Sequence record: OM319461.1
Length of the DNA stretch: 64,000 nt
Direction: 5' to 3' (one strand)
The notes under the pieces: model-generated
What the model was told of the DNA's origin: nothing
The model's input: only the letters and a program-made list of their open reading frames with translations
Databases searched by the model: none
Part shown: positions 2,383-18,274 of the stretch, piece by piece
How the letters are laid out: every line of letters begins with the position of its first letter
Position numbering within the stretch: position 1 is the first letter of the stretch
Position numbers and translations under genes: made by a program

Positions 2383-3249
2383 TTAGAACGTATGTTTGTT
2401 TGACTGATAAGGATTTGCTTTTGTGAAGTAAACGACCTCACCAGTTTTGCGATCAAAGCCATAATCCAAGAAAAGACTATGTAGTCCTGATTCTGTTGAT
2501 GTGTACGCAGGCATAAAGTACTTAACCCAACTTGGGTGGTTGTTGCTACCTAAGCCACGCCATGAGATAAAGTACGTCGCATGTGTTTTGCGAGTAAGCT
2601 TTCCATCGATGATATCACTAGAGATCTGCCAGATGTCTTTCCATGCTTTCATTTCAGATGGATGCTTCTTGGCTAGCGCAGGAACAAAGGTATCGATCTT
2701 GCCCCATACTACATCTTCAATATCTGTGATGTACGGACCCATGCCAGAATACTGGCCACGTTCTACTACAGCGGCACAAATGTTGTTCTTGTAGAAACGA
2801 CCTTTGTAATCTTCAGTCCAGCCACGTGGATCCACGGCACGGTTTGTGATTGCCCAAGCAATAGTCTCACGTGCTTCTGATGGTTCTCCGTTCGCTTCCG
2901 TAAATGTCGCAATAGCTAGACATAGTTTATTCTGCAACGGAGTTAAAGCAAGCTTTGGTTTATACGGTTCCTTGCCTTGATTGAGTTTCACTGCCAGGTC
3001 ACGGATCTGTTTGTGCGCAATACGCAGACGTTCTTCGTATGCATCTTCGATGCGTTGTTGAATTTCCAAGTCAGACTCAAGTTCTTCTCGTGTTAGTTCT
3101 TCTTGGTTTAACGCAGCGTTCAACTCTACCTTTTCAGAATAGAGGCGATTGATTGTGCTGCTGAACAACAGAACGATTACTAACAATACCCAGGCAGTGA
3201 TGTTGAGTAAATAGAAGTGGCTTGTTTTTACTTGTTTGTACTTTGTCAT
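2383..3249 (-). CDS. Membrane-anchored SleB-like (Hydrolase_2) cell wall hydrolase (288 aa; start moved to MTKYKQ)
   Basis: CLAIATFTEANGE...IAWAITNRA...ICAAVVERGQYS motif; N-terminal TM plus coiled coil; AGGA SD at ATG 3249. Confidence 0.8.
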   Translation of the reverse strand: MTKYKQVKTSHFYLLNITAWVLLVIVLLFSSTINRLYSEKVELNAALNQEELTREELESDLEIQQRIEDAYEERLRIAHKQIRDLAVKLNQGKEPYKPKLALTPLQNKLCLAIATFTEANGEPSEARETIAWAITNRAVDPRGWTEDYKGRFYKNNICAAVVERGQYSGMGPYITDIEDVVWGKIDTFVPALAKKHPSEMKAWKDIWQISSDIIDGKLTRKTHATYFISWRGLGSNNHPSWVKYFMPAYTSTESGLHSLFLDYGFDRKTGEVVYFTKANPYQSNKHTF

Positions 3250-3286
3250 CTTAGTGGTTTCCTTTAAATGAATTAATTCCAAGAAG

Positions 3287-3299
3287 GTAATATAGAGAT
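3287..3299 (-). promoter_or_regulatory. Early-type promoter motif ATCTCTATATTAC
   Basis: Exact motif immediately after the portal terminator and upstream of the hydrolase. Confidence 0.75.
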
Positions 3300-3300
3300 A

Positions 3301-3336
3301 AAAAGTGCCTGAGACCTCCGAAGAGATCCCAGACAT
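3301..3336 (-). terminator. Intrinsic terminator of the portal gene
   Basis: 13-bp stem with G-U pairs, UUCG loop, followed by TTTT on the minus strand. Confidence 0.8.
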
Positions 3337-3347
3337 TTTGTTAGTTA

Positions 3348-6122
3348 TTAAGCAAGAGGATCTTCTGTATCAGGATCATCTGGGTCGATGTCTAATTCAG
3401 GATCGTCTTCAGGGTCAGTAACCTCAGGAACTTCCTCAGGTTCCTCTTCTACCCCGGCCAAAGGATCTACTTCATCTGGGTCAGCAGGGTCTTCTTCCTC
3501 TTCACCAGTCAAATCAAAATCAATTGGTTCTTCTTCCTCGCCTAAAGGATCAGGAGTTTCTTCTTCAGCTCCGGCCAAAGGATCTGCTTCCTCTTCCTCT
3601 TCGCCACCTAGTCCCAAGTCAATTGGGTCTTCAGTGACTGTTAGCGGATCGGCAACATCTGGGTCACCAGGTTCATCATCTGTACCTGGCTCCAGGTCAA
3701 GTCCGGTGTCTTCTTCAACAAACGGCTCGCCATCATCACTAAACGGAGTAGCCACGCCAGAGCCGAACACGTCAGCCCCACCAGGGACAGGAGCACCAGG
3801 AATAGGAGCAGCCCCACCAAACCCAGCATTACCAGGATTGCTTCCAGCATCTGTGCCATCAGTATCTTCCTTACGTTTTGGATTATCTAGGTATTTCTGA
3901 ATCAACGCATCGTTGTTATCAATACCTTTAAGAATAGCTTTAACCGTTGGACCGATCGCTTTAAATACCTTACGGTAGTGCTCAGGGATTTCCTTGTTAA
4001 AGCCAGATTCACTATCAGGGTCAATAAGCTCCCAGATTTCCGGTAGGATATTGTTGTCCTTCAAGTAGCGACGTTTGTATGCAGATGCATAGATGTTACG
4101 AATATCATCCAGTTGGTCACGCGTGTATTGACTATCAATACCAGCCATACCACGAAGCATGTCATCGGAAATGATCGATGGGAATACTTCATCAACGAAA
4201 CGAGAAATCTTATCCCAGGCGTCTGCATGTTGTTCTACACGAGACATATCTGCGGTAGGCATAACAATCTCAAGCGAACGAACAAAAGCAGCAGGGTCAG
4301 TAATTCCAGCGTCTTTGATTTCTTTGATGAACTGAGGAGAGAACTCAATTACCCGGCGGATGTAATCCAACAGACATTTCTTAAACTTGCGTTGTTTTGT
4401 CATTGCACGTTTTGCAGACAACAAGTCATTTAGAATTACCTGAGTAGCAAACTCACCCTGTAGGGATTGGTCGATTGCTTCTGGACTTACACCTAGACCA
4501 GCATACTGAAGACGACGCAATTGTTGATCAACTTCGGTATCGATCTGCGTAACACGAGACTTGCCTGAATCAGATAACTCAGTAGATGTTTTCGGGAATG
4601 CCGTACCGCCATCGATTTTAACGCGATATGCGGCTCTCTGAATAGAGGTTACAATTTCCGATGGATTGATAGTACCAATAGGGAAGTTAAGGCTTGTCAT
4701 CTTGCTCAGTTCGTGCAAGACGGTTTCTACGGTTCCTAATTGGTCATCGTCATCTTCATCAAGGGTAATTGCCACATCGGTTACTGGAATAGCATTGTGT
4801 ACTAGATTCATCACACCAGCAATTTGAATGATTGCACGGATAGATGAGTAGTAAGCTGTTTTCTCCAATAGGGAAACACCTTGACCCATGTCGTTGTAAT
4901 CCATGGCCATGTAGCTAACTAGTTTAGCTGGCACAAAGATAAGACGAGTTTTCTTTTGCTTCAAGTGACGATGCAACAGGATACGATAAAAGTTATGGTA
5001 TTCTGAAACGTCTACGTCGCCACGAACAAGACCAGAAGACTTAATCTTTTCACGGATAGGCTTTTCAACAAAGTCAACCCAACGACCCATGAGTTCATCA
5101 AACGACATCTTCGCTTTCTTGTCTTTTGAATCTTCAATAAAGCCAAGGTCTTTGATGATTGTGTACTCGTTAGATGTTTCGTCATGCAGGGCTTTCTTCA
5201 TGCGTGCCAACAGGTCTTTCATAAAGCCCGTGTCTTGACAAGAAGTACCTAGCTGACCACTATCGTCTGCAAGGATATAGTAGCCGTGGTGTTTTGACTT
5301 GTCCGATGGATCTCCGAGTGGCATAACGATATCCGGAGACAAACGAATACGAAGTGCTTGTGTTTGACGCTCGTCTTCGATGATCTCATCAATAACAAGA
5401 CAGCCTTCGTTTTTCTTCTCTGTGTGATCAGTAGCAAATGACATATTTTCAAAGTCAAAACCAGATGACACATTCTTGTTGATGATGTGCTGGCGACAAG
5501 AATCACGATAGAACAACTTGTAGTTATCATGAATACCGTCGATGCCTGCTTTGGTCAATGCCGGGTCAGTGTGTGTATGTACACCAATATCGGCAAACAG
5601 ATCAGTAGCACTTGCTTTGTCAAAGCTTTCTAAATCCATCTGTCCGACAATCGAATCGATCTGTGCAGGAGGAAGGATTAGATGAACTACCGCACCATGA
5701 TCATAAAGAATGTCGCCGAGATAGTCGCCAACTTTTTCTTCTAGCTCTAGGTGGGTATTTAGTACCTCTTGAATACGAGCTACTGCGATTGGGTTTACCT
5801 TGCCAGGATAAAGCACAGGGTTAACACGCAAACGGAATTTAAAATCAGACAGGTCTTTTGGCGCAAGTACTTGCGCCACTGTGATTTCTTTTGCTAGATT
5901 TAGGTCAGGGTGAACTTCCAGAATACCTTTTGCTGTAGACAGCTGTTCTGTACGCTCACTCAATAAAGCACGGATCTGTTGCGTCTTTTGTTTCAGGGAA
6001 GACGAAGGTTTGTCGTCTTTTACATTTCCCTCTGCATCAACAGGACGCAACCCTGCTTTAACTGACTTGGCCGGAACCGGGATTGTCATCGCGGCATCTG
6101 ACCAGTCATTCTTTTTGGACAT
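3348..6122 (-). CDS. Portal protein (phiKZ gp129-like, 924 aa) with acidic C-terminal tail
   Basis: Size, D/E-rich tail, divergent position relative to gp128/gp127-like genes; AAGGAG SD. Confidence 0.8.
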   Translation of the reverse strand: MSKKNDWSDAAMTIPVPAKSVKAGLRPVDAEGNVKDDKPSSSLKQKTQQIRALLSERTEQLSTAKGILEVHPDLNLAKEITVAQVLAPKDLSDFKFRLRVNPVLYPGKVNPIAVARIQEVLNTHLELEEKVGDYLGDILYDHGAVVHLILPPAQIDSIVGQMDLESFDKASATDLFADIGVHTHTDPALTKAGIDGIHDNYKLFYRDSCRQHIINKNVSSGFDFENMSFATDHTEKKNEGCLVIDEIIEDERQTQALRIRLSPDIVMPLGDPSDKSKHHGYYILADDSGQLGTSCQDTGFMKDLLARMKKALHDETSNEYTIIKDLGFIEDSKDKKAKMSFDELMGRWVDFVEKPIREKIKSSGLVRGDVDVSEYHNFYRILLHRHLKQKKTRLIFVPAKLVSYMAMDYNDMGQGVSLLEKTAYYSSIRAIIQIAGVMNLVHNAIPVTDVAITLDEDDDDQLGTVETVLHELSKMTSLNFPIGTINPSEIVTSIQRAAYRVKIDGGTAFPKTSTELSDSGKSRVTQIDTEVDQQLRRLQYAGLGVSPEAIDQSLQGEFATQVILNDLLSAKRAMTKQRKFKKCLLDYIRRVIEFSPQFIKEIKDAGITDPAAFVRSLEIVMPTADMSRVEQHADAWDKISRFVDEVFPSIISDDMLRGMAGIDSQYTRDQLDDIRNIYASAYKRRYLKDNNILPEIWELIDPDSESGFNKEIPEHYRKVFKAIGPTVKAILKGIDNNDALIQKYLDNPKRKEDTDGTDAGSNPGNAGFGGAAPIPGAPVPGGADVFGSGVATPFSDDGEPFVEEDTGLDLEPGTDDEPGDPDVADPLTVTEDPIDLGLGGEEEEEADPLAGAEEETPDPLGEEEEPIDFDLTGEEEEDPADPDEVDPLAGVEEEPEEVPEVTDPEDDPELDIDPDDPDTEDPLA

Positions 6123-6226
6123 GGGGTTTCTCCTTTGTAATTACTAAAAAATTAGTCACCCTAATTAAAAACAATAGTACCGCGGAAGCAAATTCTATAG
6201 TGCTTTAAACACATTCGGAGGGCCTC

Positions 6227-8284
6227 ATGGCTGATCTTTTCGACTCGTACGCCGAGGAATGTAGAGCATTGGCTAGATCATTGGTCATCAAGTTTGACTT
6301 GCAAAACACGCTTGTTAACAAACGTCTATTAGAACTAGGTTATGAAATCACTACCGACCCATCGGGTTGGAAGTATAACCTTAACTTGGCAGGCGAGTAC
6401 CATGAACGCGATGAGTTAATGTATGTTGTTTCGAATGACACACAAGCAACGATTCCGTTTACGAAAGAATCCTTGGCCAATCATCCGCGTACGAAAAGCG
6501 ACTTTCTAAATCGTACCGATAACTACTATCGGGCATTAGAAGACAAGTATCCATTACAGCGTCTTCTTATTAAATCCATCTGTCGTAACATTACGATTCA
6601 TCAGGTGGTAAATGCAAGAGACTTCCAAATTCTCGATTGGGATAGAACCCTAGTCGCCAAGAACGAAGTAAGTCTTATTAAAGATCTACAGGCATGGATC
6701 GATGATTTTGTAGAAGCTAACTGGAACCAAAATGCAGTTATCTCTGATCCAGGTTATCCGGCAGCTTTCTATGCAGTCATGGCACAGCACATTCCAGTCG
6801 TAATAGAAAACCTACGTAAGGCAAAGTCACATACCGTTGAAGCATCACAGTTTCACATCTGGACTTATCTGGCTGGGTTCTATGCACTGGATCGCTATCG
6901 TAATGTTCTGTCTCACGAACAAGCAATCTGGCTATATTACAATATCCGTAATGTTCGCCGCTATCTTGGTCGTACTGACAAGATGAAAGAGTTAATTGAT
7001 GTTCTACTTACAAAGAGTGGACTCAAACTCAATCGTCTTTATTATAGGCAGAACGAAGATGCTATCGACACACAGCTGTTCAAACATAGTTTCTTCTACA
7101 AGCACGACATCCTAGATGAAACGGACAATGCCGAAGAACTTACGTTCGAAGTCATGCGTAAAACGAAAGAGCTCGGTCTTGATAACGAACGTGATTTGAA
7201 AGACGATGTTGACATGCTTATACATCGTGGTAAGTACTCTTCTATCAACGATCGTATTGTTGGCCTAGTAGAAGCAGAGCAGACAGTCACCGATGGCTCT
7301 CAAACAGTAGAAGTTTATCGTAAGCGTTGGGACTATGCCATCTATCTTGCTCATCTCGGTATCTATGAACCAGACATTACTATCCCTCTGCCAAACGGCG
7401 CAGAGCGTACACTGAAACTAAAGGATGCAATCATTCTTTATTTCTTTGCCCAACAAGAAATCCTGGGTGGCGATAGAATTGCTGTACCGACCATTACAAT
7501 TGATTGGCTGGCTCCTACTGGCTATCCATCTTTCTCTTCTCTTCGACGTCTCTTGACGGACAATGTTTCTGACGAAATGATTAATTCGTTTCTTGACAAG
7601 AAACTTGACCTTAAGGTAGACAATGCCCTGGATTTTGAAAATCTCATTCAGCGAGTTATCAATCTGCACCAATGGCAAGAAGTTACATGGGAAAGCCAGA
7701 ACGGACACATGCGTAGAGCAGAGACCGAACAGCTAGCAAATGCCATGTGGAAAACGGTGACTTGTCAGCTTGCCGCTCCAGGTACTATCTACAATGACTG
7801 GCTCAAAACAGTTCAAATAAATAAGTATGACTTTGGTAAGTCAGACTGGACTACGATTGCAGACAATGTCCTTATGGCGGTCACTGGCGAAGAATTAGAA
7901 TCCGGCGGTTTACCAATAAGACAACAATCGATGCTCGATATCTTTGACAGTCTTACAAGTTATACTCTTCGTTATATTGTTGGCGATACAACAGGCAAAG
8001 TACAAAACTTTGAAATTCCAAACATCCATTGGGAAGTAGAACGCTTTATTGTTATCGAAGATCACTACATACCAGTGGGCAGAGTTCACGATACAGACGA
8101 GATGGCTACCGAGCTAACTTACGATGTCTTTATTGAGCTTCCTGATCGTCATCATTACCTAGAAGAACATACCGCAGAATACCTCGTTGAAACTGGCTCT
8201 GAATTATACATCGATGAAAACACCGGTGAGACTCATGAAGTCACAGTTTTAAACCTCGAAAGCTTTGAAGAAATAATCGATTAA
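6227..8284 (+). CDS. Virion structural protein (phiKZ gp128-like, probable baseplate component)
   Basis: 685 aa, GGAGG SD, synteny divergent from the portal. Confidence 0.7.
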   Translation: MADLFDSYAEECRALARSLVIKFDLQNTLVNKRLLELGYEITTDPSGWKYNLNLAGEYHERDELMYVVSNDTQATIPFTKESLANHPRTKSDFLNRTDNYYRALEDKYPLQRLLIKSICRNITIHQVVNARDFQILDWDRTLVAKNEVSLIKDLQAWIDDFVEANWNQNAVISDPGYPAAFYAVMAQHIPVVIENLRKAKSHTVEASQFHIWTYLAGFYALDRYRNVLSHEQAIWLYYNIRNVRRYLGRTDKMKELIDVLLTKSGLKLNRLYYRQNEDAIDTQLFKHSFFYKHDILDETDNAEELTFEVMRKTKELGLDNERDLKDDVDMLIHRGKYSSINDRIVGLVEAEQTVTDGSQTVEVYRKRWDYAIYLAHLGIYEPDITIPLPNGAERTLKLKDAIILYFFAQQEILGGDRIAVPTITIDWLAPTGYPSFSSLRRLLTDNVSDEMINSFLDKKLDLKVDNALDFENLIQRVINLHQWQEVTWESQNGHMRRAETEQLANAMWKTVTCQLAAPGTIYNDWLKTVQINKYDFGKSDWTTIADNVLMAVTGEELESGGLPIRQQSMLDIFDSLTSYTLRYIVGDTTGKVQNFEIPNIHWEVERFIVIEDHYIPVGRVHDTDEMATELTYDVFIELPDRHHYLEEHTAEYLVETGSELYIDENTGETHEVTVLNLESFEEIID

Positions 8285-8295
8285 GGATTAGAAAA

Positions 8296-9126
8296 ATGGC
8301 TAATACAACTGTTAAAACCTTTTGGTGGGCTCAATTGGAAGCTGCCCGCCGTCCAGGTAACACATACGTCCCTATGGACTTCTCTACACTAAATGGCTAC
8401 TTCAAAATTGAAGATGGTGCTGCTCTTGCTCAAGACGAGTTCCCAGAACCAAAGCTGTTGGTAATCGGCCGTGGTGGTCACGAGAATGAAGGTCTTGACA
8501 TCACCAACACAAAACAACACCGTGTAAACAATGCTCGTCTATTTGAACATCTTCCGTTTGTACTGCGAGAAGTAAACGACGACTTGGAAGATGACGAACG
8601 TCTTAAGTATCGTTTACGTCGCCTAGAGAACTACAACGGTAAAGATTACTTTGCTTACTATGCAAAAGTTCTTAACCCAATCAGTTCTGGTGCAGGCGGT
8701 GAACAACTAACGGTTAATGCTGATGGTGAAATCGAACGTAAACCTTATGTTCCAACAATTGCTCAGTACGACCCACAACCTGTATCTATGGTAGATGGCG
8801 AAGTAAACAGCGCGACAGATACTTACCTTTCTGTTTCTGACATCCAAGAGATTGTTATTACTCCTGCTGAGATTCAAGACATTCTTGATGCGGTGGACAT
8901 CATCTATGGTGACCGTCGTAAAGCAGTAATCTCAGAAATGGGTATTGCAAGTTCATTTGATCGCCCTACGAGTTCATCTGCTGGTGGTATCTCTGCGAAC
9001 TATACAGAAGCTATCGGCTCTCAAATCTGTTCGTTCCTTGGCGGTAGTCGTCGTGAACTAGAATCTCAGAATACTGAAATTCGTTTGCGTCTACGTGGTG
9101 GTAATACTCTGCCTCTACTATCATAA
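8296..9126 (+). CDS. Virion structural protein (phiKZ gp127-like)
   Basis: 276 aa; IGRGGH and RLFEHLPFVLREVNDDL motifs; synteny. Confidence 0.7.
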   Translation: MANTTVKTFWWAQLEAARRPGNTYVPMDFSTLNGYFKIEDGAALAQDEFPEPKLLVIGRGGHENEGLDITNTKQHRVNNARLFEHLPFVLREVNDDLEDDERLKYRLRRLENYNGKDYFAYYAKVLNPISSGAGGEQLTVNADGEIERKPYVPTIAQYDPQPVSMVDGEVNSATDTYLSVSDIQEIVITPAEIQDILDAVDIIYGDRRKAVISEMGIASSFDRPTSSSAGGISANYTEAIGSQICSFLGGSRRELESQNTEIRLRLRGGNTLPLLS

Positions 9127-9719
9127 TGCTTACCGGATTCAGCGAAGACGATCTACGCATTATTGCAATTGACCCGGGGATCAATACTTGTGGTTTTGCT
9201 GTCTTAAGTATCTCGATGGAAACATTCGAGATCTCCATATTAGATGCTTATACTGTTAAGAGTAATTCTTTTGTTACTCAAAACAAAATGTTTGCAATGA
9301 TACACGGAGATAAGGCAGCTAAACTACATGGCCTTGAAGAACATATCTATACCCTTTGTGAAAGATGTGAACCATATATGGTAACAAGTGAAGCTCCTTT
9401 CATGGGGCGCTTTGCTGCTGCCTTCGGTGCTTTGAAAGAAGTTACTATGGTATTACGCAAAGGTTCGTATCGTTATGACTTCATGATGCCTTTTATGTTT
9501 ATTGAACCAACTCCGGTTAAAAAGCACATGAAAGTAAAAGGTACCAGCAGCGATAAAAACCTCATGACAGTCGCTCTAAGCAAGAGAACAGATTTGGTGT
9601 GGGCAGACACCATTGTGTTTGATAATCTTGACGAGCACTCTGTGGATGCGGTATCAGTTGGGCTTTACCATGTAGACCGTATACGGGAACAACTGATCAA
9701 AGAAAATAAAAAACATTAA
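9126..9719 (+). CDS. ruvC: RuvC-like Holliday junction resolvase
   Basis: IIAIDPGINTCGFAV, VTSEAPF and DEHSVDA catalytic motifs; TAATG coupling to the upstream gene. Confidence 0.85.
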   Translation: MLTGFSEDDLRIIAIDPGINTCGFAVLSISMETFEISILDAYTVKSNSFVTQNKMFAMIHGDKAAKLHGLEEHIYTLCERCEPYMVTSEAPFMGRFAAAFGALKEVTMVLRKGSYRYDFMMPFMFIEPTPVKKHMKVKGTSSDKNLMTVALSKRTDLVWADTIVFDNLDEHSVDAVSVGLYHVDRIREQLIKENKKH

Positions 9720-9724
9720 GTAAC

Positions 9725-9750
9725 TCCCTCTCTCCATTTGGAGAGAGGGA
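9725..9750. terminator. Bidirectional terminator-like hairpin after ruvC
   Basis: Perfect 11-bp stem tccctctctcc / ggagagaggga between convergent ORFs. Confidence 0.75.
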
Positions 9751-9755
9751 TGTTA

Positions 9756-10098
9756 TCATTTAACGATGTCCATGAGATGATCGCGACCGATGGTCTTGGC
9801 ATTCTTATAGACTACCGAAGTATAATCATATTTGTTTTCATGCTTTTGGCTTGCCCGTCGGATAAAATCATCGAGTCCCATTGACTGTTCCTTGGCTTGG
9901 TTTTCAAAGGAACATTTCTGACATGCCACAACTGCGTTTAAAGTGATCTGGGTACTGTTCAAAATCCCCGTGTTTACGACATGTAATTGTTACCTTGGTC
10001 CTGTTATTTGTATAATGCACTTTAGAATAATCAAACTTGTCGCCGTATTTTCTTTTACAAAAAGAAATGAAATTCTTTTCTCTTTCCTCTCTAGTCAT
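9756..10098 (-). pseudogene. Frameshifted, truncated remnant of a homing-endonuclease-type gene with two DUF723-like zinc-ribbon repeats
   Basis: KYGDKFDYSKVHYTNNRTKVTITCRKHGDFEQYPDHF...G / CQKC...KHENKYDYTSVVYKNAKT, joined by a +1 shift at GGC-A-TGT (about 9924); GGAG SD; no nuclease domain visible. Confidence 0.75.
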
Positions 10099-10129
10099 GT
10101 TTTTCTCCATAAATAGTATCAACACTACA

Positions 10130-10142
10130 GTTATATAGATCT
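10130..10142 (-). promoter_or_regulatory. Early-type promoter motif AGATCTATATAAC
   Basis: Motif variant about 30 nt upstream of the remnant's ATG. Confidence 0.65.
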
Positions 10143-10155
10143 AAGCCCTCTGTGA

Positions 10156-10227
10156 AACACTGACGCATGCTGTGTGGGTCTTTATCATCTAGATCGCATA
10201 AAAGAACAGCTAATGACCGACAAATAG
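10156..10227 (+). pseudogene. Stranded second copy of the ruvC 3' end (NTDACCVGLYHLDRIKEQLMTDK*)
   Basis: 13 of 17 residues identical to the RuvC C-terminus (DAVSVGLYHVDRIREQL); no start codon, and an in-frame TGA at 10153. Confidence 0.85.
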
Positions 10228-10280
10228 TATGGTTCTTATTTTCAAGAATCCATGGCTATTTTGGATGGAGCATTTCTGTA

Positions 10281-10625
10281 ATGTCTAATCGAACTTTAAC
10301 CTCTTATGGCTTAGGCAGTGGAGGTCTAGCGATTAGCACAAAGATTCATTCTGGTGAAGTAGTAGAGGCGGTTAAGTCCGCTTCTACTATTCCTTTTGAT
10401 TCGTTGTGGTATAAGCTATTTCCAAGCCTTGTGGAGTCAGGTTCACTAACACAGATTGATGGTAAGCTTTTGTTGGATGGTATTATATTGTCTGATGTGG
10501 TTTCTATCGCTGTCGGTGTTATCTCTGGTCTCGTACTGATGCATCGCGCCATTGGCGACTTTTATATCTTCCTACTCAAGAGAAAGAATGCTCGTCTAGA
10601 GCGTGACTTACTTGAAGAAGAATAA
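10281..10625 (+). CDS. Hypothetical single-TM protein (114 aa; start moved to MSNRTL)
   Basis: GGAG SD at 10267; hydrophobic segment VVSIAVGVISGLVLM followed by a basic/acidic tail. Confidence 0.75.
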   Translation: MSNRTLTSYGLGSGGLAISTKIHSGEVVEAVKSASTIPFDSLWYKLFPSLVESGSLTQIDGKLLLDGIILSDVVSIAVGVISGLVLMHRAIGDFYIFLLKRKNARLERDLLEEE

Positions 10626-10640
10626 AAAAAAAATAAATGA

Positions 10641-10672
10641 TACTCCCCCCTCCCATCAGGGAGGAGGGGTAT
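10641..10672. terminator. Bidirectional terminator between convergent genes
   Basis: GC-rich stem-loop flanked by A-rich and T-rich tracts. Confidence 0.7.
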
Positions 10673-10680
10673 TATTATTT

Positions 10681-13281
10681 TTACTTGTGCTTAACGCCGA
10701 TTAGACGAACCATGCCAAAGTCTACATCTTCACATGCAAACACAAACATGTCACCAGCCGCATTGATCAAGTACAGGTACTCAGTACGATCAGGTTTAGT
10801 TGGGATTGCTTGGAATACACCAGCAACAATACGCCATAGATCTTGTCCGTGAACTGGATCAACGATTGCTGCACTGTAGCTATCTTTTGGTAGTTGGAAC
10901 TCTTTCAAGAACGCCACATGACCAGACTGCTCATTAACCAGCATTTGTGCTAATGCTTTTGGAGCTTTTGGTTCTTCACTTTCGTCTTCATCTTCTTCTA
11001 CGTCATCGTCAGTAGTGAACGAAATACCTTCATTGGAGATATTGAAGAAGTTTTCACGAATGTTTGTGATCTCTTCCAAGAACGACTCCATTGCGTTTTG
11101 GCTCTGTAGGTATTCTACTACAGCCGAAACATCTTTAGGGAATTCGATCATGTCAGCTGTCGCACGTGGTACGCCCATGCGATTGTAGATCACGTCAGTG
11201 AATAGCGGAGACAATTGTTGAGTCATGTATTGACATAAGTCGTATTGCTCTGCGTGTCCTGCTGCTTGGTATAATGCCAATAGACCTTGTAATGGATCTT
11301 CAGCATTCAGCTCGTCTAGTAGTTCGTCCGCTACGTTTAGAATAGGAGTTTCTTCACGTAGTTCGAAAGGACTAACGATCAGTGCACCTTGGTCAGCTGC
11401 GGTTGCTTGTTTCATTGCCGTTTGTACTGCCAGACCAGAAATGTTCATTGCATCAATGTACTCTTCTGCCATTTGTACTTTAGGGAATGTAGGAACACAT
11501 TGACCAGTATTTTCAGCAACCAATGGTGCTGCTTCAGGAGCAGTGTATTCACCATGGCCTGAGCTTAGGATATAACCTAGATGTTTTTCACGTTGCATAA
11601 AGCGCTCACGATTTACTACGAACTCAACACAAGTGTCTGGGTAGTACGCCAAAGCACGAGCATGAGTTTTGTTGTTTACAAGTACGGTTAGAGGAGCCAT
11701 CTCTTTTGGTAGGTATGGTTCATCTTCGATTAGTGCTGCTGCGTAATCTGTACCGTCGATTGTTACATGGAAGCGGTAATCCGCACCAAGGTCGTTTGCT
11801 GGGGTTTCCATAGTATTTCCTTCTACTTCTACAGGTGCTGTAGTTGGTTGTGGTGCAACAGCATACTCTTCGAAGCCAGTTAGATGCATCGTTGGGTCAT
11901 CTTGACTTGGAGCTGTTGTTTCGAAAGCAGGTGTCTTGTTCGCCATCATTGCGAACTCCATGCCAGGGATATCCATATTAGGATTGCTTGCTGGCTGGGT
12001 AGCAGGCTGCTGTTGGTTAACTTGCCATGCTGGTTGTTGCTGCTGATTCGCATTCCAAGCTGGCTGCTGTGCTGCTGGTGTGTAGCTTTGTTGTTGCTGT
12101 GCCGCACGGTACTGTTCAAACCAAGCAGACTGACGACCAGTAAGGTCAACCAAAATCTCTTGCCCACTTTGGTTACGGAAGATAACGATTGGCATGCCTT
12201 CTGAGTCGAAGATCATTTGGCCGTTGTCTTGTAGTTGGTAAAGAGAACCACCAACGTAAGCTTGCATGTCAGCAGGGTTAACGTTGATTGTCTGACCTTG
12301 TGCAGTAACGATAGGCTGGTTTTGGAAGTTGATAAGGATTGATTGTGGTGCTGTGTTGAAAGTGTTGAATGCTGGGTTGTATGCGTTGTACATTGTTTCT
12401 GTCTCCGGTTCCGGGGTAAGTTTGAAATTGATTGCAGTATTTTGTTCCATGTTTGCTGTGTAGCCCATTGCTGGTCCACCAGTTGTCACGGAGGTTGTGT
12501 TACTGAGCTGTTCGATAGTGCGCTTGGCACGGGCTTCTAATTCAAGCTTCTTGTTGAACTCACGTTCTTGGCTGTCAAGCATGTCTGACACGCCAGGGTC
12601 AAGATGTTTGAAATGATATGCTTCATCATTTGGCATTGTGATACTTCCAGTTAAGCTTTTACCTTGAGCTATCTGTGTAAGTGATATAGGTTTAGCTTTT
12701 TGTCGAGATATCTCTGCTAGCTTCTTTGCTGAGTTTTGAAGACCTTCAATATGGATGCCTTCTGACTGTAGCAGTTCTGCTTTCAGTTTGCTGTATTCCA
12801 GACGTACTCGCTCACCACGTGATACGTAGTCAAGTTTGTACTCTTCGGATACTGGCTCTCGATTAGGATCAGAATACCAAAACGAACACATCCAATCCCA
12901 GCAAAGTTCACCGGCATGTTGTATTACATTTGGCATTGTTCTGACGCCCACAGTACCACTCTGCATGCGAATTGTATCAGCGATGATTGTTTCATACACG
13001 GCAGGTATCATCTGCTCTGAGAGGCTGTCGTAGCCCATCTGTGTACTTGGATCAATCATCTGTTCGTAGTACTTCGTCATTACCGAAGAACCACATAGCT
13101 GTTCCATTCGCACATAGAAGTGTTGAATACCTTCACGAATTTCTTTTAAAAGTTGTTCGCTTTGATAATCATTATTCAGGATATTGTAGCCGGTTACATA
13201 CGTTGCTGCACCGGCGCGCTTTACCTTACCCTGAATATATTTTCCCGTTACCTGATACGCAAGAAAGTCGGGTGTTCTCAC
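10681..13281 (-). CDS. Conserved hypothetical protein (phiKZ gp124-like position, 866 aa) with central Q/A/P-rich low-complexity region
   Basis: Long ORF, GTG start with AGGTG SD, directly downstream of the nvRNAP subunit. Confidence 0.8.
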   Translation of the reverse strand: MRTPDFLAYQVTGKYIQGKVKRAGAATYVTGYNILNNDYQSEQLLKEIREGIQHFYVRMEQLCGSSVMTKYYEQMIDPSTQMGYDSLSEQMIPAVYETIIADTIRMQSGTVGVRTMPNVIQHAGELCWDWMCSFWYSDPNREPVSEEYKLDYVSRGERVRLEYSKLKAELLQSEGIHIEGLQNSAKKLAEISRQKAKPISLTQIAQGKSLTGSITMPNDEAYHFKHLDPGVSDMLDSQEREFNKKLELEARAKRTIEQLSNTTSVTTGGPAMGYTANMEQNTAINFKLTPEPETETMYNAYNPAFNTFNTAPQSILINFQNQPIVTAQGQTINVNPADMQAYVGGSLYQLQDNGQMIFDSEGMPIVIFRNQSGQEILVDLTGRQSAWFEQYRAAQQQQSYTPAAQQPAWNANQQQQPAWQVNQQQPATQPASNPNMDIPGMEFAMMANKTPAFETTAPSQDDPTMHLTGFEEYAVAPQPTTAPVEVEGNTMETPANDLGADYRFHVTIDGTDYAAALIEDEPYLPKEMAPLTVLVNNKTHARALAYYPDTCVEFVVNRERFMQREKHLGYILSSGHGEYTAPEAAPLVAENTGQCVPTFPKVQMAEEYIDAMNISGLAVQTAMKQATAADQGALIVSPFELREETPILNVADELLDELNAEDPLQGLLALYQAAGHAEQYDLCQYMTQQLSPLFTDVIYNRMGVPRATADMIEFPKDVSAVVEYLQSQNAMESFLEEITNIRENFFNISNEGISFTTDDDVEEDEDESEEPKAPKALAQMLVNEQSGHVAFLKEFQLPKDSYSAAIVDPVHGQDLWRIVAGVFQAIPTKPDRTEYLYLINAAGDMFVFACEDVDFGMVRLIGVKHK

Positions 13282-14904: not shown

Positions 14905-15972
14905 TTATGATAATGCAAAGATACCACCGACAATGGCGAGTAGCTTTAACACAGGGGCAATGATATCTGACAGTGTTTTTGTCAGCTTGCCGAAGAACGA
15001 TTGATTCGTGTCACGCTTGACATTCTTCGCTTCGTTCCGGGTGCGCTCTAATTCAGCCTTAAGCTCTGTGATCTGGTCTTCTGCTTCTCTGCATTTGGCC
15101 TTCTCGATCATGAGCTCCTTGACAGCGCTCTTCTCTGCTTTACTCTTGGAGTCAAACAGAGCGAAGGTATACTTTTGACCATCATAGTCACATTCTACCT
15201 TCTTTGTATCCGCGTCCATGTGGACAACATCAACAAGTTCTTCACCACATCTAGTTGTTACATAGACACGAAGAACAAATCTACCACGGCGTTCGGACGT
15301 CTCCTCGACCAACGTAGATAATGTCATTCCATTTAGGTTATAGTAGTAGGTACCACCGTGACCCTCTGGAGCAGATACGTGAAAACGAAGTCCAAGTGCA
15401 GAGGAGTTACCCAAGTCACTAGAACCATGAAGGGAGGTCACCTTATTCATCAACGTAGATGGGTTAACACCAATCGTAACACCAATGAACGGCAGGTAAA
15501 CACCATGTAAGTTATTCTGAAGTGTTTCAGAGGAAACAAAGATCAGATAACTATAGTTGTCGATATTGCATCTAGCAACATCTTCTGCCGTAGGTGGGTC
15601 AATGGATACAAAGTCATAAAGCTTCGTATGTGACGCCACAGTCCCATGGAGATCATAAGTCGAAGTAACTTCGATTAAGATACCATCTTTAGCTCGTACC
15701 CTGTCCAATAAAGGACCTACTCGAGCTTGACTGTGCTCCGTGTTAGATGGTCGAATGTTGACCATGGGTGGAACCCGACCAACATGTCCGTCACCACGAC
15801 AGACATAAAGGTCAGCTCCTCCTCTATTAAAATTATAGATCGAGTACGAAGAAGTATTCAGATCTAAAAGACCAGGACCGATTAGGTGCTGTCTTAATGT
15901 TTCGCCGACTTTAGCATTGCTAATTTCATCGACGTTTCCGCTGAGGCGGAATGCAACCATCTTAGTGCGCAT
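14905..15972 (-). CDS. Conserved hypothetical protein (phiKZ gp122-like) with C-terminal coiled coil and hydrophobic tail
   Basis: 355 aa; GGAGG SD; first gene after the early motif. Confidence 0.8.
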   Translation of the reverse strand: MRTKMVAFRLSGNVDEISNAKVGETLRQHLIGPGLLDLNTSSYSIYNFNRGGADLYVCRGDGHVGRVPPMVNIRPSNTEHSQARVGPLLDRVRAKDGILIEVTSTYDLHGTVASHTKLYDFVSIDPPTAEDVARCNIDNYSYLIFVSSETLQNNLHGVYLPFIGVTIGVNPSTLMNKVTSLHGSSDLGNSSALGLRFHVSAPEGHGGTYYYNLNGMTLSTLVEETSERRGRFVLRVYVTTRCGEELVDVVHMDADTKKVECDYDGQKYTFALFDSKSKAEKSAVKELMIEKAKCREAEDQITELKAELERTRNEAKNVKRDTNQSFFGKLTKTLSDIIAPVLKLLAIVGGIFALS

Positions 15973-16012
15973 AATAGCCTCCCCTCTAAAATAAAGAATT
16001 AGTATACATGCA

Positions 16013-16108: not shown

Positions 16109-18274
16109 TTATGCAGGTTGTAGGTAGAACTCTTCGATACCAGTAACGTCGATACGACCTAGGATAGGTAGCGTAACGTGGAAAGACGTACGTGGAATGA
16201 TTTGTTGCATTGTGTGCGTAGAACCACCTAGTGATACTTGTGCTTGGTGTACGAACGGAGAACACATGATTTGTGTACCGAAAGACATTACGTCAGCACC
16301 AGTAGTATCTGTACGTGCTAGAGATACGTAGATCTTACCGCGCATACGTGCGTCGTCAAGCTCACTTACTTTGAAGCGACGGTTGTTGCCTAGAGTACGG
16401 CCATCACCTGAAGTCATTAGGTGGTTAGCGATGATTGGATCTGTAACTACGATTACTTCGAAGTTAGAACGAGAACCAGTGTACATTTCTAGAGCTGGTA
16501 GGTAACCAGAATCAACGATCAGACGGTTAGCAAGCATTGTGATTGCGTTCACCAAGTGTACACGCAAGTCTTCGTTACCGTAACGAGAGTCGCGGTTACG
16601 AACGATTTGGTTTACGTTGATGCCGTTCTTGATGTATTTAGATTCAACAAGTTGACCACCGATTGCAGCAGCGTTGCCTGGTAGATCTTGAGTAGCGATC
16701 AGTTTCTTCTCGAATTCAAGAAGAGTAGTTACTGAAGTACCAAGGTCACGTAGACGTGCAGCAGAAGATAGACCATCGATTGATACGCCGTTACCTAGTG
16801 CAGCGATTGGCTTAACAGTAGATAGTGGAGCACCTAGTGGAGCAGCTAGACGGTACTTAGTTACACGACCAGCGTCAACGATAGTACCAACATCACGCAT
16901 GTTGCTGTTTGAACGACGAGCAGCTGGGAAGTAACCAGATTCTTCTTTAACGATTGTTACTAGAGCAATGAATGCAGCTAGTTGAGTAGCGTCAGCAGTA
17001 GAAGCGTAGTTAGTACCGAAGTCAACCGCAACGATTTCAGCAGCAGCTAGGTCTACAGTCATGTTCGCATCTTCGTCGATTTGAGCAGAGACACGTAGCT
17101 GTAGTTTCATACGGTAGTCGCCAGTTAGCCATGCTAGACTAGAAGTGTCTAGGCCAGCACTTACAGCAGCGCCTGCGTAGTCAAGGTCAGTAGAGTGTAC
17201 CCATACAGTGAATACGCCTACAGTAGTTGAAGTACGCTCGAAGCCTTCAGCTTGGTAGTTAAGCATTGCGCCAGCGTGAGTAGTTAGATCTACTTCAACG
17301 TCAACATTGTCAGTAGAGTCTTTTAGACGGATTACTTGACGACCGATAGATACTAGTGGATCTAGAGTATCTTGTTCAGTCATGTCACCTAGTTTGATTA
17401 GCTGACTGTTAGACGAAACGTCGATTAGGTCAGTTGGCTCACCGAACTTAAGTGGACGAGTGTTGAATGTAACACCGTGTTGAGTTACAGCTTTCTCAGC
17501 GATTGCCGCTTGTAGTTTAGCTGCACGTGCTGCATCAGAAACCGGAATGATTTCAGTGCTGTTGTCTTCCATGATAGTATGGTCGATAGGAGCACGAACA
17601 AGGTATTTACGTTGGAATTTGTTTTCTGCACCAGTACCTGGACGGTAAGTACGACGGTAAGTGTATGGAACCAACACTTTAAGGTCTAGACCGTTTTGAG
17701 ACGCAGGTAGTACAGATGGACGGAAGAACGTTTGAGAGAACGGAGAAGTTGCTGCAACAACACCAGCAGTCATTGCTGATTTAACAGTGAACTTGTCGAA
17801 TTTGAAATCGTCAAAGCCTTCAACGTCGTAGCCGTCTAGCGCACCGATAACTTCTGTGTCAGCATCCATGTTTGCAGATGGTGATACGTAAGCTTCAGCG
17901 TAAGCTTGTGGAGCAGCAGCAGCGATAACCATTGTCGCAGCAGCAGTTAGACCAGCTTGGAAACCAGGGTGGTCAGCAGCTTCTTTGTCTAGGAAATCAG
18001 CAACGCGTGCTTTTTCTGAACCTACAAGAAGTTTTGCTAGGAATTCGTCGAATTTAGCTTCTTCGATTACTGACTTAGCAGCTTGTACCGCAGCAGTTAG
18101 AGTTTCTGCTTTGCTTGCTTCAAGCTTGTCCCAGTTGCCGTTGAATTCAGCAAGGATTTGGCCAGCTTCAGAAGTTAGAGACATGCTTTGGTCAGCGATT
18201 GCTGCTTGCATGTTCTCATGGATGATCTCGAATTGAGACTTACCGTACGTAGTATTCAGGAATGAATTTAACAT
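16109..18274 (-). CDS. Major capsid protein precursor (phiKZ gp120-like)
   Basis: 721 aa with extreme codon bias; PFSQTFFRPSVL, FNTRPLKFG and VIVVTDPIIANHL motifs; Ala/Glu-rich propeptide. Confidence 0.92.
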   Translation of the reverse strand: MLNSFLNTTYGKSQFEIIHENMQAAIADQSMSLTSEAGQILAEFNGNWDKLEASKAETLTAAVQAAKSVIEEAKFDEFLAKLLVGSEKARVADFLDKEAADHPGFQAGLTAAATMVIAAAAPQAYAEAYVSPSANMDADTEVIGALDGYDVEGFDDFKFDKFTVKSAMTAGVVAATSPFSQTFFRPSVLPASQNGLDLKVLVPYTYRRTYRPGTGAENKFQRKYLVRAPIDHTIMEDNSTEIIPVSDAARAAKLQAAIAEKAVTQHGVTFNTRPLKFGEPTDLIDVSSNSQLIKLGDMTEQDTLDPLVSIGRQVIRLKDSTDNVDVEVDLTTHAGAMLNYQAEGFERTSTTVGVFTVWVHSTDLDYAGAAVSAGLDTSSLAWLTGDYRMKLQLRVSAQIDEDANMTVDLAAAEIVAVDFGTNYASTADATQLAAFIALVTIVKEESGYFPAARRSNSNMRDVGTIVDAGRVTKYRLAAPLGAPLSTVKPIAALGNGVSIDGLSSAARLRDLGTSVTTLLEFEKKLIATQDLPGNAAAIGGQLVESKYIKNGINVNQIVRNRDSRYGNEDLRVHLVNAITMLANRLIVDSGYLPALEMYTGSRSNFEVIVVTDPIIANHLMTSGDGRTLGNNRRFKVSELDDARMRGKIYVSLARTDTTGADVMSFGTQIMCSPFVHQAQVSLGGSTHTMQQIIPRTSFHVTLPILGRIDVTGIEEFYLQPA

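Follow-up and report, generated by a model that had tools for sequence, protein, structure and literature searches.

Fungal mitochondria contain mobile endonuclease open reading frames (mORFs) that give rise to hybrid genes with a foreign C-terminus, the native one being left stranded. Described cases are atp6 of Allomyces macrogynus and atp6, atp9, cox2 and nad3 of Glomus (PMC3630166). In Endoconidiophora, partial C-terminal duplications of cob and atp6 are found beside degenerate GIY-YIG or LAGLIDADG open reading frames (ORFs) (PMC6279837). The free-standing endonucleases SegF, SegG and MobE of T4-type phages are associated with intronless homing, marker exclusion and co-conversion (PMC2988022, PMC2790892). 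Such free-standing nucleases cut away from their own gene, and the DNA lying between the two sites co-converts (PMC2988022). With limited exon homology, homing of the T4 td intron involves one-sided illegitimate break repair at microhomologies, with extensive degradation (Parker, Belisle and Belfort 1999, summarised in PMC2988022). Finally, the chimallivirus PhiPA3 has a homing endonuclease that is encoded by an intron of an RNA polymerase subunit gene (PMC11620839; reviewed in PMC12908238), and homing endonucleases are discussed as weapons in chimallivirus competition (PMC11620839). Here, we describe a locus of Vibrio phage C-ZP2022 where the 3' end of ruvC, the gene of a Holliday junction resolvase, is present twice, on either side of a broken homing-endonuclease gene. 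The window, i.e. the whole stretch of 64,000 nucleotides (nt) that was analysed, is identical to the C-ZP2022 record OM319461.1; the record coordinate is the window coordinate + 124,000. Positions below are those of the window, and the features are collected in Table 1.

The functional end of ruvC (9645-9695) is in frame within the ruvC ORF and translates to DAVSVGLYHVDRIREQL. Region 10162-10227 translates to DACCVGLYHLDRIKEQLMTDK*, in a frame that has upstream stops and no start codon. The two copies are in direct orientation, 517 nt apart. They are identical at 13 of 17 residues and 9 of these 13 codons differ. At the nucleotide level, the copies differ at 18 of 51 positions, distributed over the first, second and third codon positions as 3/3/12. 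Hereafter, the version found in functional ruvC is called the DAVSVGLYHVDRIREQLIKENKKH-type and that of the stranded fragment the DACCVGLYHLDRIKEQL-type. The next best match to the 17-mer in the six frames of the window is 7/17 and the maximum reached in 20 shuffles is 8/17. When 18 random substitutions are simulated, at least 13 residues are retained in at most 1 of 100,000 simulations. The third-position bias of the divergence and this simulation indicate that each copy evolved in a genome of its own, as part of a coding sequence. In other words, they diverged under coding selection, in two different functional ruvC genes.

This result bears on one rival explanation of the locus, an in-place tandem duplication of the ruvC 3' end whose copies diverged while the nuclease gene was inserted between them independently. 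The direct orientation of the copies and their spacing of 517 nt would be accounted for. However, 35% nucleotide divergence for 76% residue identity, with 12 of 18 changes at third positions, needs coding selection on both copies (p of 1e-5 or less in the simulation), and a start-less copy would escape such selection. In addition, no relative has a duplication. Because both copies diverged under coding selection, chance and a decaying in-place duplication can be set aside, and we hold a tandem origin to be very improbable. A first-pass annotation of this DNA had reported the two ends with the above counts and had argued against a recent tandem duplication. Translation, shuffles and simulation confirm the former point, and the third-position-biased divergence together with the simulation bears out the latter. 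It had also placed the junction at the last catalytic motif. The junction is indeed found at the codons of the DEHxxD motif, at the start of the C-terminal helix.

The duplicated segment thus concerns the catalytic DEHxxD motif and the C-terminal helix of RuvC, which it encodes. The ruvC product is weakly matched by sequence hidden Markov models. Its AlphaFold model has a pLDDT of 89.9, and the last helix spans residues 170-196. A Foldseek search of the PDB with this model places bacterial RuvC structures on top (E 2e-9), with matches to RuvC from D. radiodurans, T. thermophilus, P. aeruginosa and E. coli at target-normalised TM-scores of 0.75-0.84. Residues D16, E89, D169, E170, H171 and D174 are invariant across the clade. 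Model and alignment together show that an RNase H-like RuvC fold with acidic catalytic residues is present in the ORF product. The ruvC ORF is contiguous and encodes the complete fold, and the nuclease gene is intergenic, antisense and located beyond the ruvC terminator. An Rfam search of region 9000-10800 (E up to 1) revealed no intron, noise apart. The contiguous ORF and the empty Rfam search agree with the earlier view that no intron, intein or integrase is involved. Within ruvC, a short palindromic hairpin, TGGTGTGGGCAGACACCA, is located at 9595-9612, about 20-30 nt 5' of the duplication junction; the terminator scan flagged it on both strands.

RuvC homologues with the same neighbours are found in 262 phage records, mostly phiKZ-like jumbo phages. 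C-ZP2022 is therefore a phiKZ-like jumbo phage with a chimallivirus-type genome. Its sister, Vibrio phage vB_pir03, shows 97% identity across the ruvC/nuclease locus and shares the arrangement of ruvC, nuclease and second copy. vB_pir03 was sequenced independently and has a different host. Because it has the same arrangement, an assembly chimera, which the first-pass annotation had named as a possible artefact, is excluded. More generally, an origin of the second copy by chance similarity or by misassembly has so little probability that we treat it as excluded, since 13/17 identical residues are to be compared with a chance maximum of 7-8/17 and the same structure occurs in both phages.

We compared the locus with those of sm033, BONAISHI and the metagenomic contigs L005-L007, as well as with 80 ruvC loci from IMG/VR. 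RuvC identity to C-ZP2022 is 66% for sm033, 60-65% for L005-L007 and 38% for BONAISHI. The five loci are syntenic, with two virion genes, ruvC, a gene of 109-118 aa and a large reverse gene. In all five, the gap between ruvC and the next gene is just 67-121 nt and the nuclease gene is absent. A second ruvC-end copy is found in C-ZP2022 and vB_pir03 only, of 84 loci with a recognised ruvC motif. It had been envisaged that endonuclease-free relatives might carry both copies, and this is not the case, the 82 other ruvC loci having no second copy. A nuclease gene of the C-ZP2022 type is present in none of the other fetched loci (80 from IMG/VR and the five syntenic relatives). The nuclease element is a lineage-specific insertion, as homing endonuclease genes would be. 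Among 5.8 billion proteins, no RuvC relative is closer than 67%, and a single-protein scan of IMG/VR identified no close ruvC relative. A degenerate 51-nt pattern designed for either end version gave 0 matches in JGI metagenomes, IMG/VR and GTDB genomes.

Between the two ruvC ends, the first-pass annotation had placed a terminator, an inverted endonuclease remnant and an early promoter of the latter. The terminator and the remnant are there. A hairpin straight after the ruvC stop is also observed in the four closest element-free relatives; alignment of the spacer that follows the functional terminator (9751-9790) with the relatives' spacers is not significant. In C-ZP2022, the nuclease ORF is split in two, and PHROG 681 'endonuclease' is matched by both pieces (E 4.7e-9 and 2e-5). 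The gene of vB_pir03 is 427 bp longer, catalytic part included. Its catalytic piece matches PHROG 681 with E 4.8e-18 and its N-terminal piece with E 1.9e-12. The vB_pir03 nuclease also matches Pfam T5orf172, of the GIY-YIG clan, with 19.0 bits, just below the cut-off of 20. No match was obtained in NCBIfam and PDB sequence searches. As judged from its profile matches, the nuclease belongs to a recognised homing-endonuclease family, T5orf172/GIY-YIG-like. Among 5.8 billion proteins, the vB_pir03 protein itself is the only close homologue and no intact one is found. Matches in phage databases have about 33% identity or less and lie in unrelated contexts. As for the promoter, a motif search, a sigma-70 scan and k-mer enrichment upstream of 52 crude genes revealed no recurrent motif and no sigma-70-like site that could be assigned to the nuclease gene on its strand, and ACAAATNNTATG is not enriched (5 matches vs 6.8 expected). 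The early promoter is therefore not confirmed.

The N-terminus of the vB_pir03 nuclease (L001 3332-3751) is composed of two modules of about 45 residues, …KYGDKFDYSKV…C..HG.F…C..C, seen as an internal repeat of 38% identity by tblastn. These modules weakly match CapR-homology and zinc-finger Pfam models and presumably form the DNA-binding part.

The nuclease gene has decayed independently in the two phages. In C-ZP2022, the reading frame is shifted by 1 nt near 9930, and 427 bp have been lost between 9789 and 9790, where the 8-nt direct repeat ATGGTCTT borders the deletion. In vB_pir03, the lesion is one in-frame TGA, at a codon which is CGA in C-ZP2022 (window 9860). Since the lesions differ, the nuclease gene of the common ancestor was intact, recently.

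Which of the two ruvC ends is resident and which one is imported is suggested by their composition. The codon adaptation index (CAI) of the functional end is 0.50, which corresponds to the 1.3rd percentile of 17-codon windows of long ORFs. The drop in CAI toward this end starts at about 9636. It contains codons that are rare in the genome, GGG (3%), CGG (1%), GCG (10%) and ATA (7%). By comparison, the fragment has a CAI of 0.69, equal to that of the ruvC body (0.686). The cysteine conserved in the clade (xCVGLY) is retained in the fragment and is a serine in the functional end. The functional end also has an unusual 7-residue tail, IKENKKH, and the four relatives end with D*. Of 51 nt, the fragment matches the four relatives at 29, 31, 25 and 26 positions and the functional end at 25, 26, 25 and 23. 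At both levels, DNA and protein, none of these four relatives is closer to the functional end than to the fragment; none of them exceeds 67% RuvC identity. From these features, which amount to a few positions, we consider it reasonably probable that the functional end is imported and the fragment resident.

The reverse polarity has also to be weighed. The functional end and its terminator would then be resident, and a mobile cassette, made up of the nuclease gene with its 5' region and an internal piece of a former host's ruvC that hitch-hiked along, would have dropped into the spacer between the terminator and the motif upstream of the next gene. This would fit with the fact that everything from 9756 to about 10213 falls within what is a simple spacer in the relatives. 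Moreover, a terminator comes right after the functional end, an order shared with the four closest relatives, and the fragment has neither stop nor terminator. On the other hand, the codon usage of the two ends, the cysteine and the closeness of the fragment to the four relatives all oppose such a polarity. If the cut is in ruvC, the stretch from the cut to the nuclease gene must co-convert (PMC2988022). Under the reverse polarity, the origin of the fragment is moved to an earlier genome and not explained. We regard the reverse polarity as unlikely, if worth keeping in mind.

The anatomy of the stranded copy is informative. Its left part, AGCCCTCTGTG (10144-10154), matches AGCACTCTGTG (9634-9644), from which it is 510 nt away, and not 517 as for the rest of the copy. 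The score of this match is reached by 35 of 2000 shuffles, and a MAFFT alignment with the relatives agrees on the left part. It has two nonsynonymous changes, at the invariant E170 and H171. Further leftward homology, to about 10130, appeared in one local alignment and in MAFFT; it is not relied on, the 11-mer 10144-10154 alone being supported. On the right side, the 'DK*' codons of the MTDK* tail overlap the spacer motif GACAAATAGTATGGTTCTTATTTT. This motif aligns with motifs located 42-44 nt past the ruvC stop, beyond the terminator, in L005, L006 and L007 (z of 4.2, 4.7 and 3.2; scores reached by 0, 0 and 4 of 300 shuffles). Its TATG core is about 50-55 nt before the start of the next gene, in the relatives and C-ZP2022 alike, and the motif is not a general promoter consensus within the window. 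Because this overlapping motif is conserved in element-free relatives, MTDK* is probably not the native ruvC tail. In the four closest relatives, ruvC ends one residue after the 17-aa block (D*), with the terminator directly after the stop. Read against these alignments, the stranded copy is an internal fragment of about 69 nt that corresponds to codons ~170-190. It stops at L190, is split by the 7-nt insert and lacks some 50 nt of native sequence, namely the last codon, the stop and the terminator. It had been proposed that an intact native end was left before the next gene; the fragment does not have this form.

Could the fragment have been kept for a function? It is located 46-115 nt upstream of the start codon of the nuclease, the 7-nt insert falls precisely where the two halves of the presumed target meet, and a single base distinguishes the fragments of C-ZP2022 and vB_pir03. 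I-TevI represses its own promoter by means of an operator that resembles its homing site. By analogy, the fragment might be a non-cleavable nuclease binding site (operator or decoy) or else a part of the leader or promoter of the next gene. However, near-identity of the two phages extends over the whole 7.8-kb tract, which makes the conservation of the fragment uninformative. The nuclease is dead in both genomes, the promoter searches found none and no other genome has such a fragment. A retained function is in our opinion distinctly improbable.

Taken together, we consider it fairly probable that a free-standing homing endonuclease of the T5orf172/GIY-YIG type, now dead, left this scar by intronless homing combined with illegitimate repair. 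In a donor chimallivirus, the nuclease gene would have been located just past the ruvC terminator and ahead of the next gene, in antisense orientation. The nuclease would have cut endonuclease-free relatives about 100 nt away, at conserved ruvC codons for the last catalytic motif and the start of the C-terminal helix. Double-strand-break repair would then have copied the donor ruvC 3' end, the terminator and the nuclease gene into the recipient. The working ruvC would thereby end with a divergent and presumably uncleavable donor sequence, as codon usage and sequence oddities suggest. The far side would have been joined non-homologously, and about 69 nt of the resident ruvC would have been stranded between the 5' region of the nuclease gene and the motif of the next gene. 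The 7-nt insert at V173/D174 and the disappearance of about 50 nt with the resident stop and terminator may belong to the same event or to later decay. More speculatively, the insert would also destroy a cleavable target in the nuclease's own genome. The block would have been recently shared by C-ZP2022 and vB_pir03 before the nuclease decayed independently in each of them. The first-pass idea that the element swapped in a divergent end is thus upheld in part. Two homeologous ends, arisen through an endonuclease-associated event, are present, and the imported status of the functional end is favoured indirectly by the CAI, the Cys/Ser difference and the tail.

Several points weigh against this scenario. 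Neither a close element-free relative nor a donor is present in any collection searched. The fragment is devoid of native stop and terminator and has sequence on both sides of the presumed junction, so that a simple break model needs an extra deletion and an extra insertion. The nuclease is dead in both phages and its target is a presumed one. The polarity rests on the composition of 17-24 codons and one conserved residue. Finally, the near-identical tract described below could be the product of ordinary mosaic recombination, several such tracts being found in both genomes.

A more elaborate possibility is an obligate 'end-replacement cassette', in which a recoded, cleavage-immune RuvC helix, the terminator and the antisense nuclease would form a unit and the fragment split by 7 nt would be kept as a non-cleavable operator or decoy. 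Through such a cassette, if real, a free-standing endonuclease could attack the active-site codons of a core phage gene with neither intron nor intein, and phages would have their own equivalent of the mitochondrial mORFs, with a regulatory twist added. We view such a cassette as rather improbable. The nuclease gene is placed between ruvC and the next gene, as is usual for free-standing homing endonucleases, and co-conversion of the ruvC end is therefore what intronless homing would be expected to produce. It is no evidence for the dedicated self-repairing design put forward in the first-pass annotation.

Sliding-window comparison with vB_pir03 shows that the locus is part of a near-identical tract, the flanks of which are about 10-20% divergent between the two phages. 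According to the list of single-nucleotide differences, near-identity on the right breaks off somewhere in 10278-10400, some 150-250 nt past the fragment. The nuclease locus is therefore at the edge of a recently exchanged block, a position compatible with nuclease-initiated gene conversion, though no proof of it. Over window positions 1-24000, the comparison with vB_pir03 (L008) is strongly mosaic. Tracts of 1% divergence or less are seen at 1-800, 2600-10400 and 16400-16800, and blocks of 10-40% divergence at 1000-2600 (maximum of 40% at 2001-2200), 10800-12400 and 15000-16000.

Table 1. Features of the ruvC/nuclease locus of C-ZP2022 (window coordinates)
Feature	Position	Strand	Remarks
ruvC-like Holliday-junction resolvase gene, intact	9126..9719	+	197-aa uninterrupted ORF, annotated Holliday junction resolvase
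Functional 3' end of ruvC (D174 to stop), most of C-terminal helix	9645..9719	+	atypical codon usage and sequence
Terminator hairpin, with ruvC and the endonuclease gene converging on it	9725..9750		11-pair stem in the terminator scan, also read as a perfect 12+12 hairpin; T-rich tail
Broken free-standing homing-endonuclease gene	9756..10098	-	N-terminal DNA-binding repeats retained, catalytic domain deleted
5' region of the endonuclease gene	10099..10143	-	GGAG ribosome-binding site 7 nt before ATG
Left part of stranded ruvC fragment (E170-V173 codons)	10144..10154	+	AGCCCTCTGTG, 10/11 nt identical to 9634-9644
7-nt insert AAACACT	10155..10161		exactly between V173 and D174 codons, breaks the frame; also in vB_pir03
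Stranded second copy, ruvC codons 174-190	10162..10212	+	DACCVGLYHLDRIKEQL, start-less; native-like codon usage
Conserved spacer motif 5' of next gene	10219..10242	+	GACAAATAGTATGGTTCTTATTTT; gives 'DK*' of the fragment's frame
Next gene, 114 aa, function not assigned	10281..10625	+	syntenic in all relatives
Tract near-identical in C-ZP2022 and vB_pir03	2600..10400		mostly 1% divergence or less; sliding-window comparison

Downstream of the fragment, the annotation of vB_pir03 contains a coding sequence of 152 aa (QNI21108.1; window 10167-10625; L001 3793-4251), the ATG of which lies inside the ruvC fragment, in another frame. This long form is probably a mis-annotation, because the relatives (109-118 aa) and the annotation of C-ZP2022 support a start at 10281. 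Inside the 114-aa gene, the terminator scan flagged a 14-pair hairpin, AGTAGTAGAGGCGG...CCGCTTCTACTATT, with a T-rich tail (10358-10391). A strong G+C-rich hairpin, CCCCCCTCCCATCAGGGAGGAGGGG, at 10643-10668 separates the 114-aa gene from a convergent 866-aa reverse gene. This hairpin probably terminates transcription from both sides, and the style of its stem resembles that of the ruvC terminator. The 866-aa ORF (10681-13281, minus strand) contains a Gln/Pro/Ala-rich low-complexity stretch, …QQQQSYTPAAQQPAWNANQQQQPAWQVNQQQPATQ…, and is among the regions most divergent from vB_pir03.

The locus suggests that, in nucleus-forming jumbo phages, a core recombination enzyme can have its catalytic C-terminal helix rewritten by a free-standing homing endonuclease. 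Such rewriting would import the version of another phage and leave a molecular fossil of the old end. The codons of the RuvC DEHxxD helix become a concrete candidate target site. The two independent inactivations, within a tract that is about 0.4% divergent, would give a dated cycle of invasion, fixation and decay. In practice, the ruvC 3' end and the 152-aa ORF of vB_pir03 are unsafe for naive phylogeny or annotation. An intron-less second route into a core gene would also be relevant to chimallivirus competition.

The principle is not new, being already known from mitochondria and T4, and the present locus is a jumbo-phage case; a limited literature search found no phage example of such a hybrid gene. 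The layout of the mORFs is observed here, two homeologous C-terminal segments flanking an endonuclease ORF, the first of them in phase and completing the gene. As in mORFs, the order is gene core, divergent in-phase C-terminus, endonuclease ORF and stranded C-terminus, presumably the original one here. The two C-termini are similar as proteins and diverged as DNA, no intron or intein is involved, and the endonuclease is often degenerate in mORFs as well. Differences are the phage host and the antisense orientation of the nuclease gene, which is behind a terminator and not fused or co-oriented. In addition, the stranded copy here comprises 69 nt of internal sequence, interrupted by 7 inserted nt. 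The native ends in Allomyces and Glomus are recognised by their match to a sister species, whereas C-ZP2022 has no element-free sister to show which end is native.

The locus also resembles T4-type intronless homing, with an intergenic nuclease, a presumed cut in a conserved neighbouring gene about 100-120 nt from the insertion point, intervening DNA that would travel along and a sporadic distribution among relatives. However, clean homing leaves no duplicated target fragment, and cleavage and homing are presumed here. Unlike SegF, SegG and MobE, the nuclease belongs to the T5orf172 type, and no close homologue of it is found. The one-sided repair described for T4 offers a mechanism for a homology-free junction on one side of a homing event, although it was observed in an experimental plasmid/phage system. 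As in PhiPA3, a homing endonuclease is found in a nucleus-forming jumbo phage, with a conserved essential gene of related phages as its target, a presumed one in the case of ruvC. The PhiPA3 enzyme is active and resides inside a self-splicing group I intron, whereas that of C-ZP2022 is intron-less and dead.

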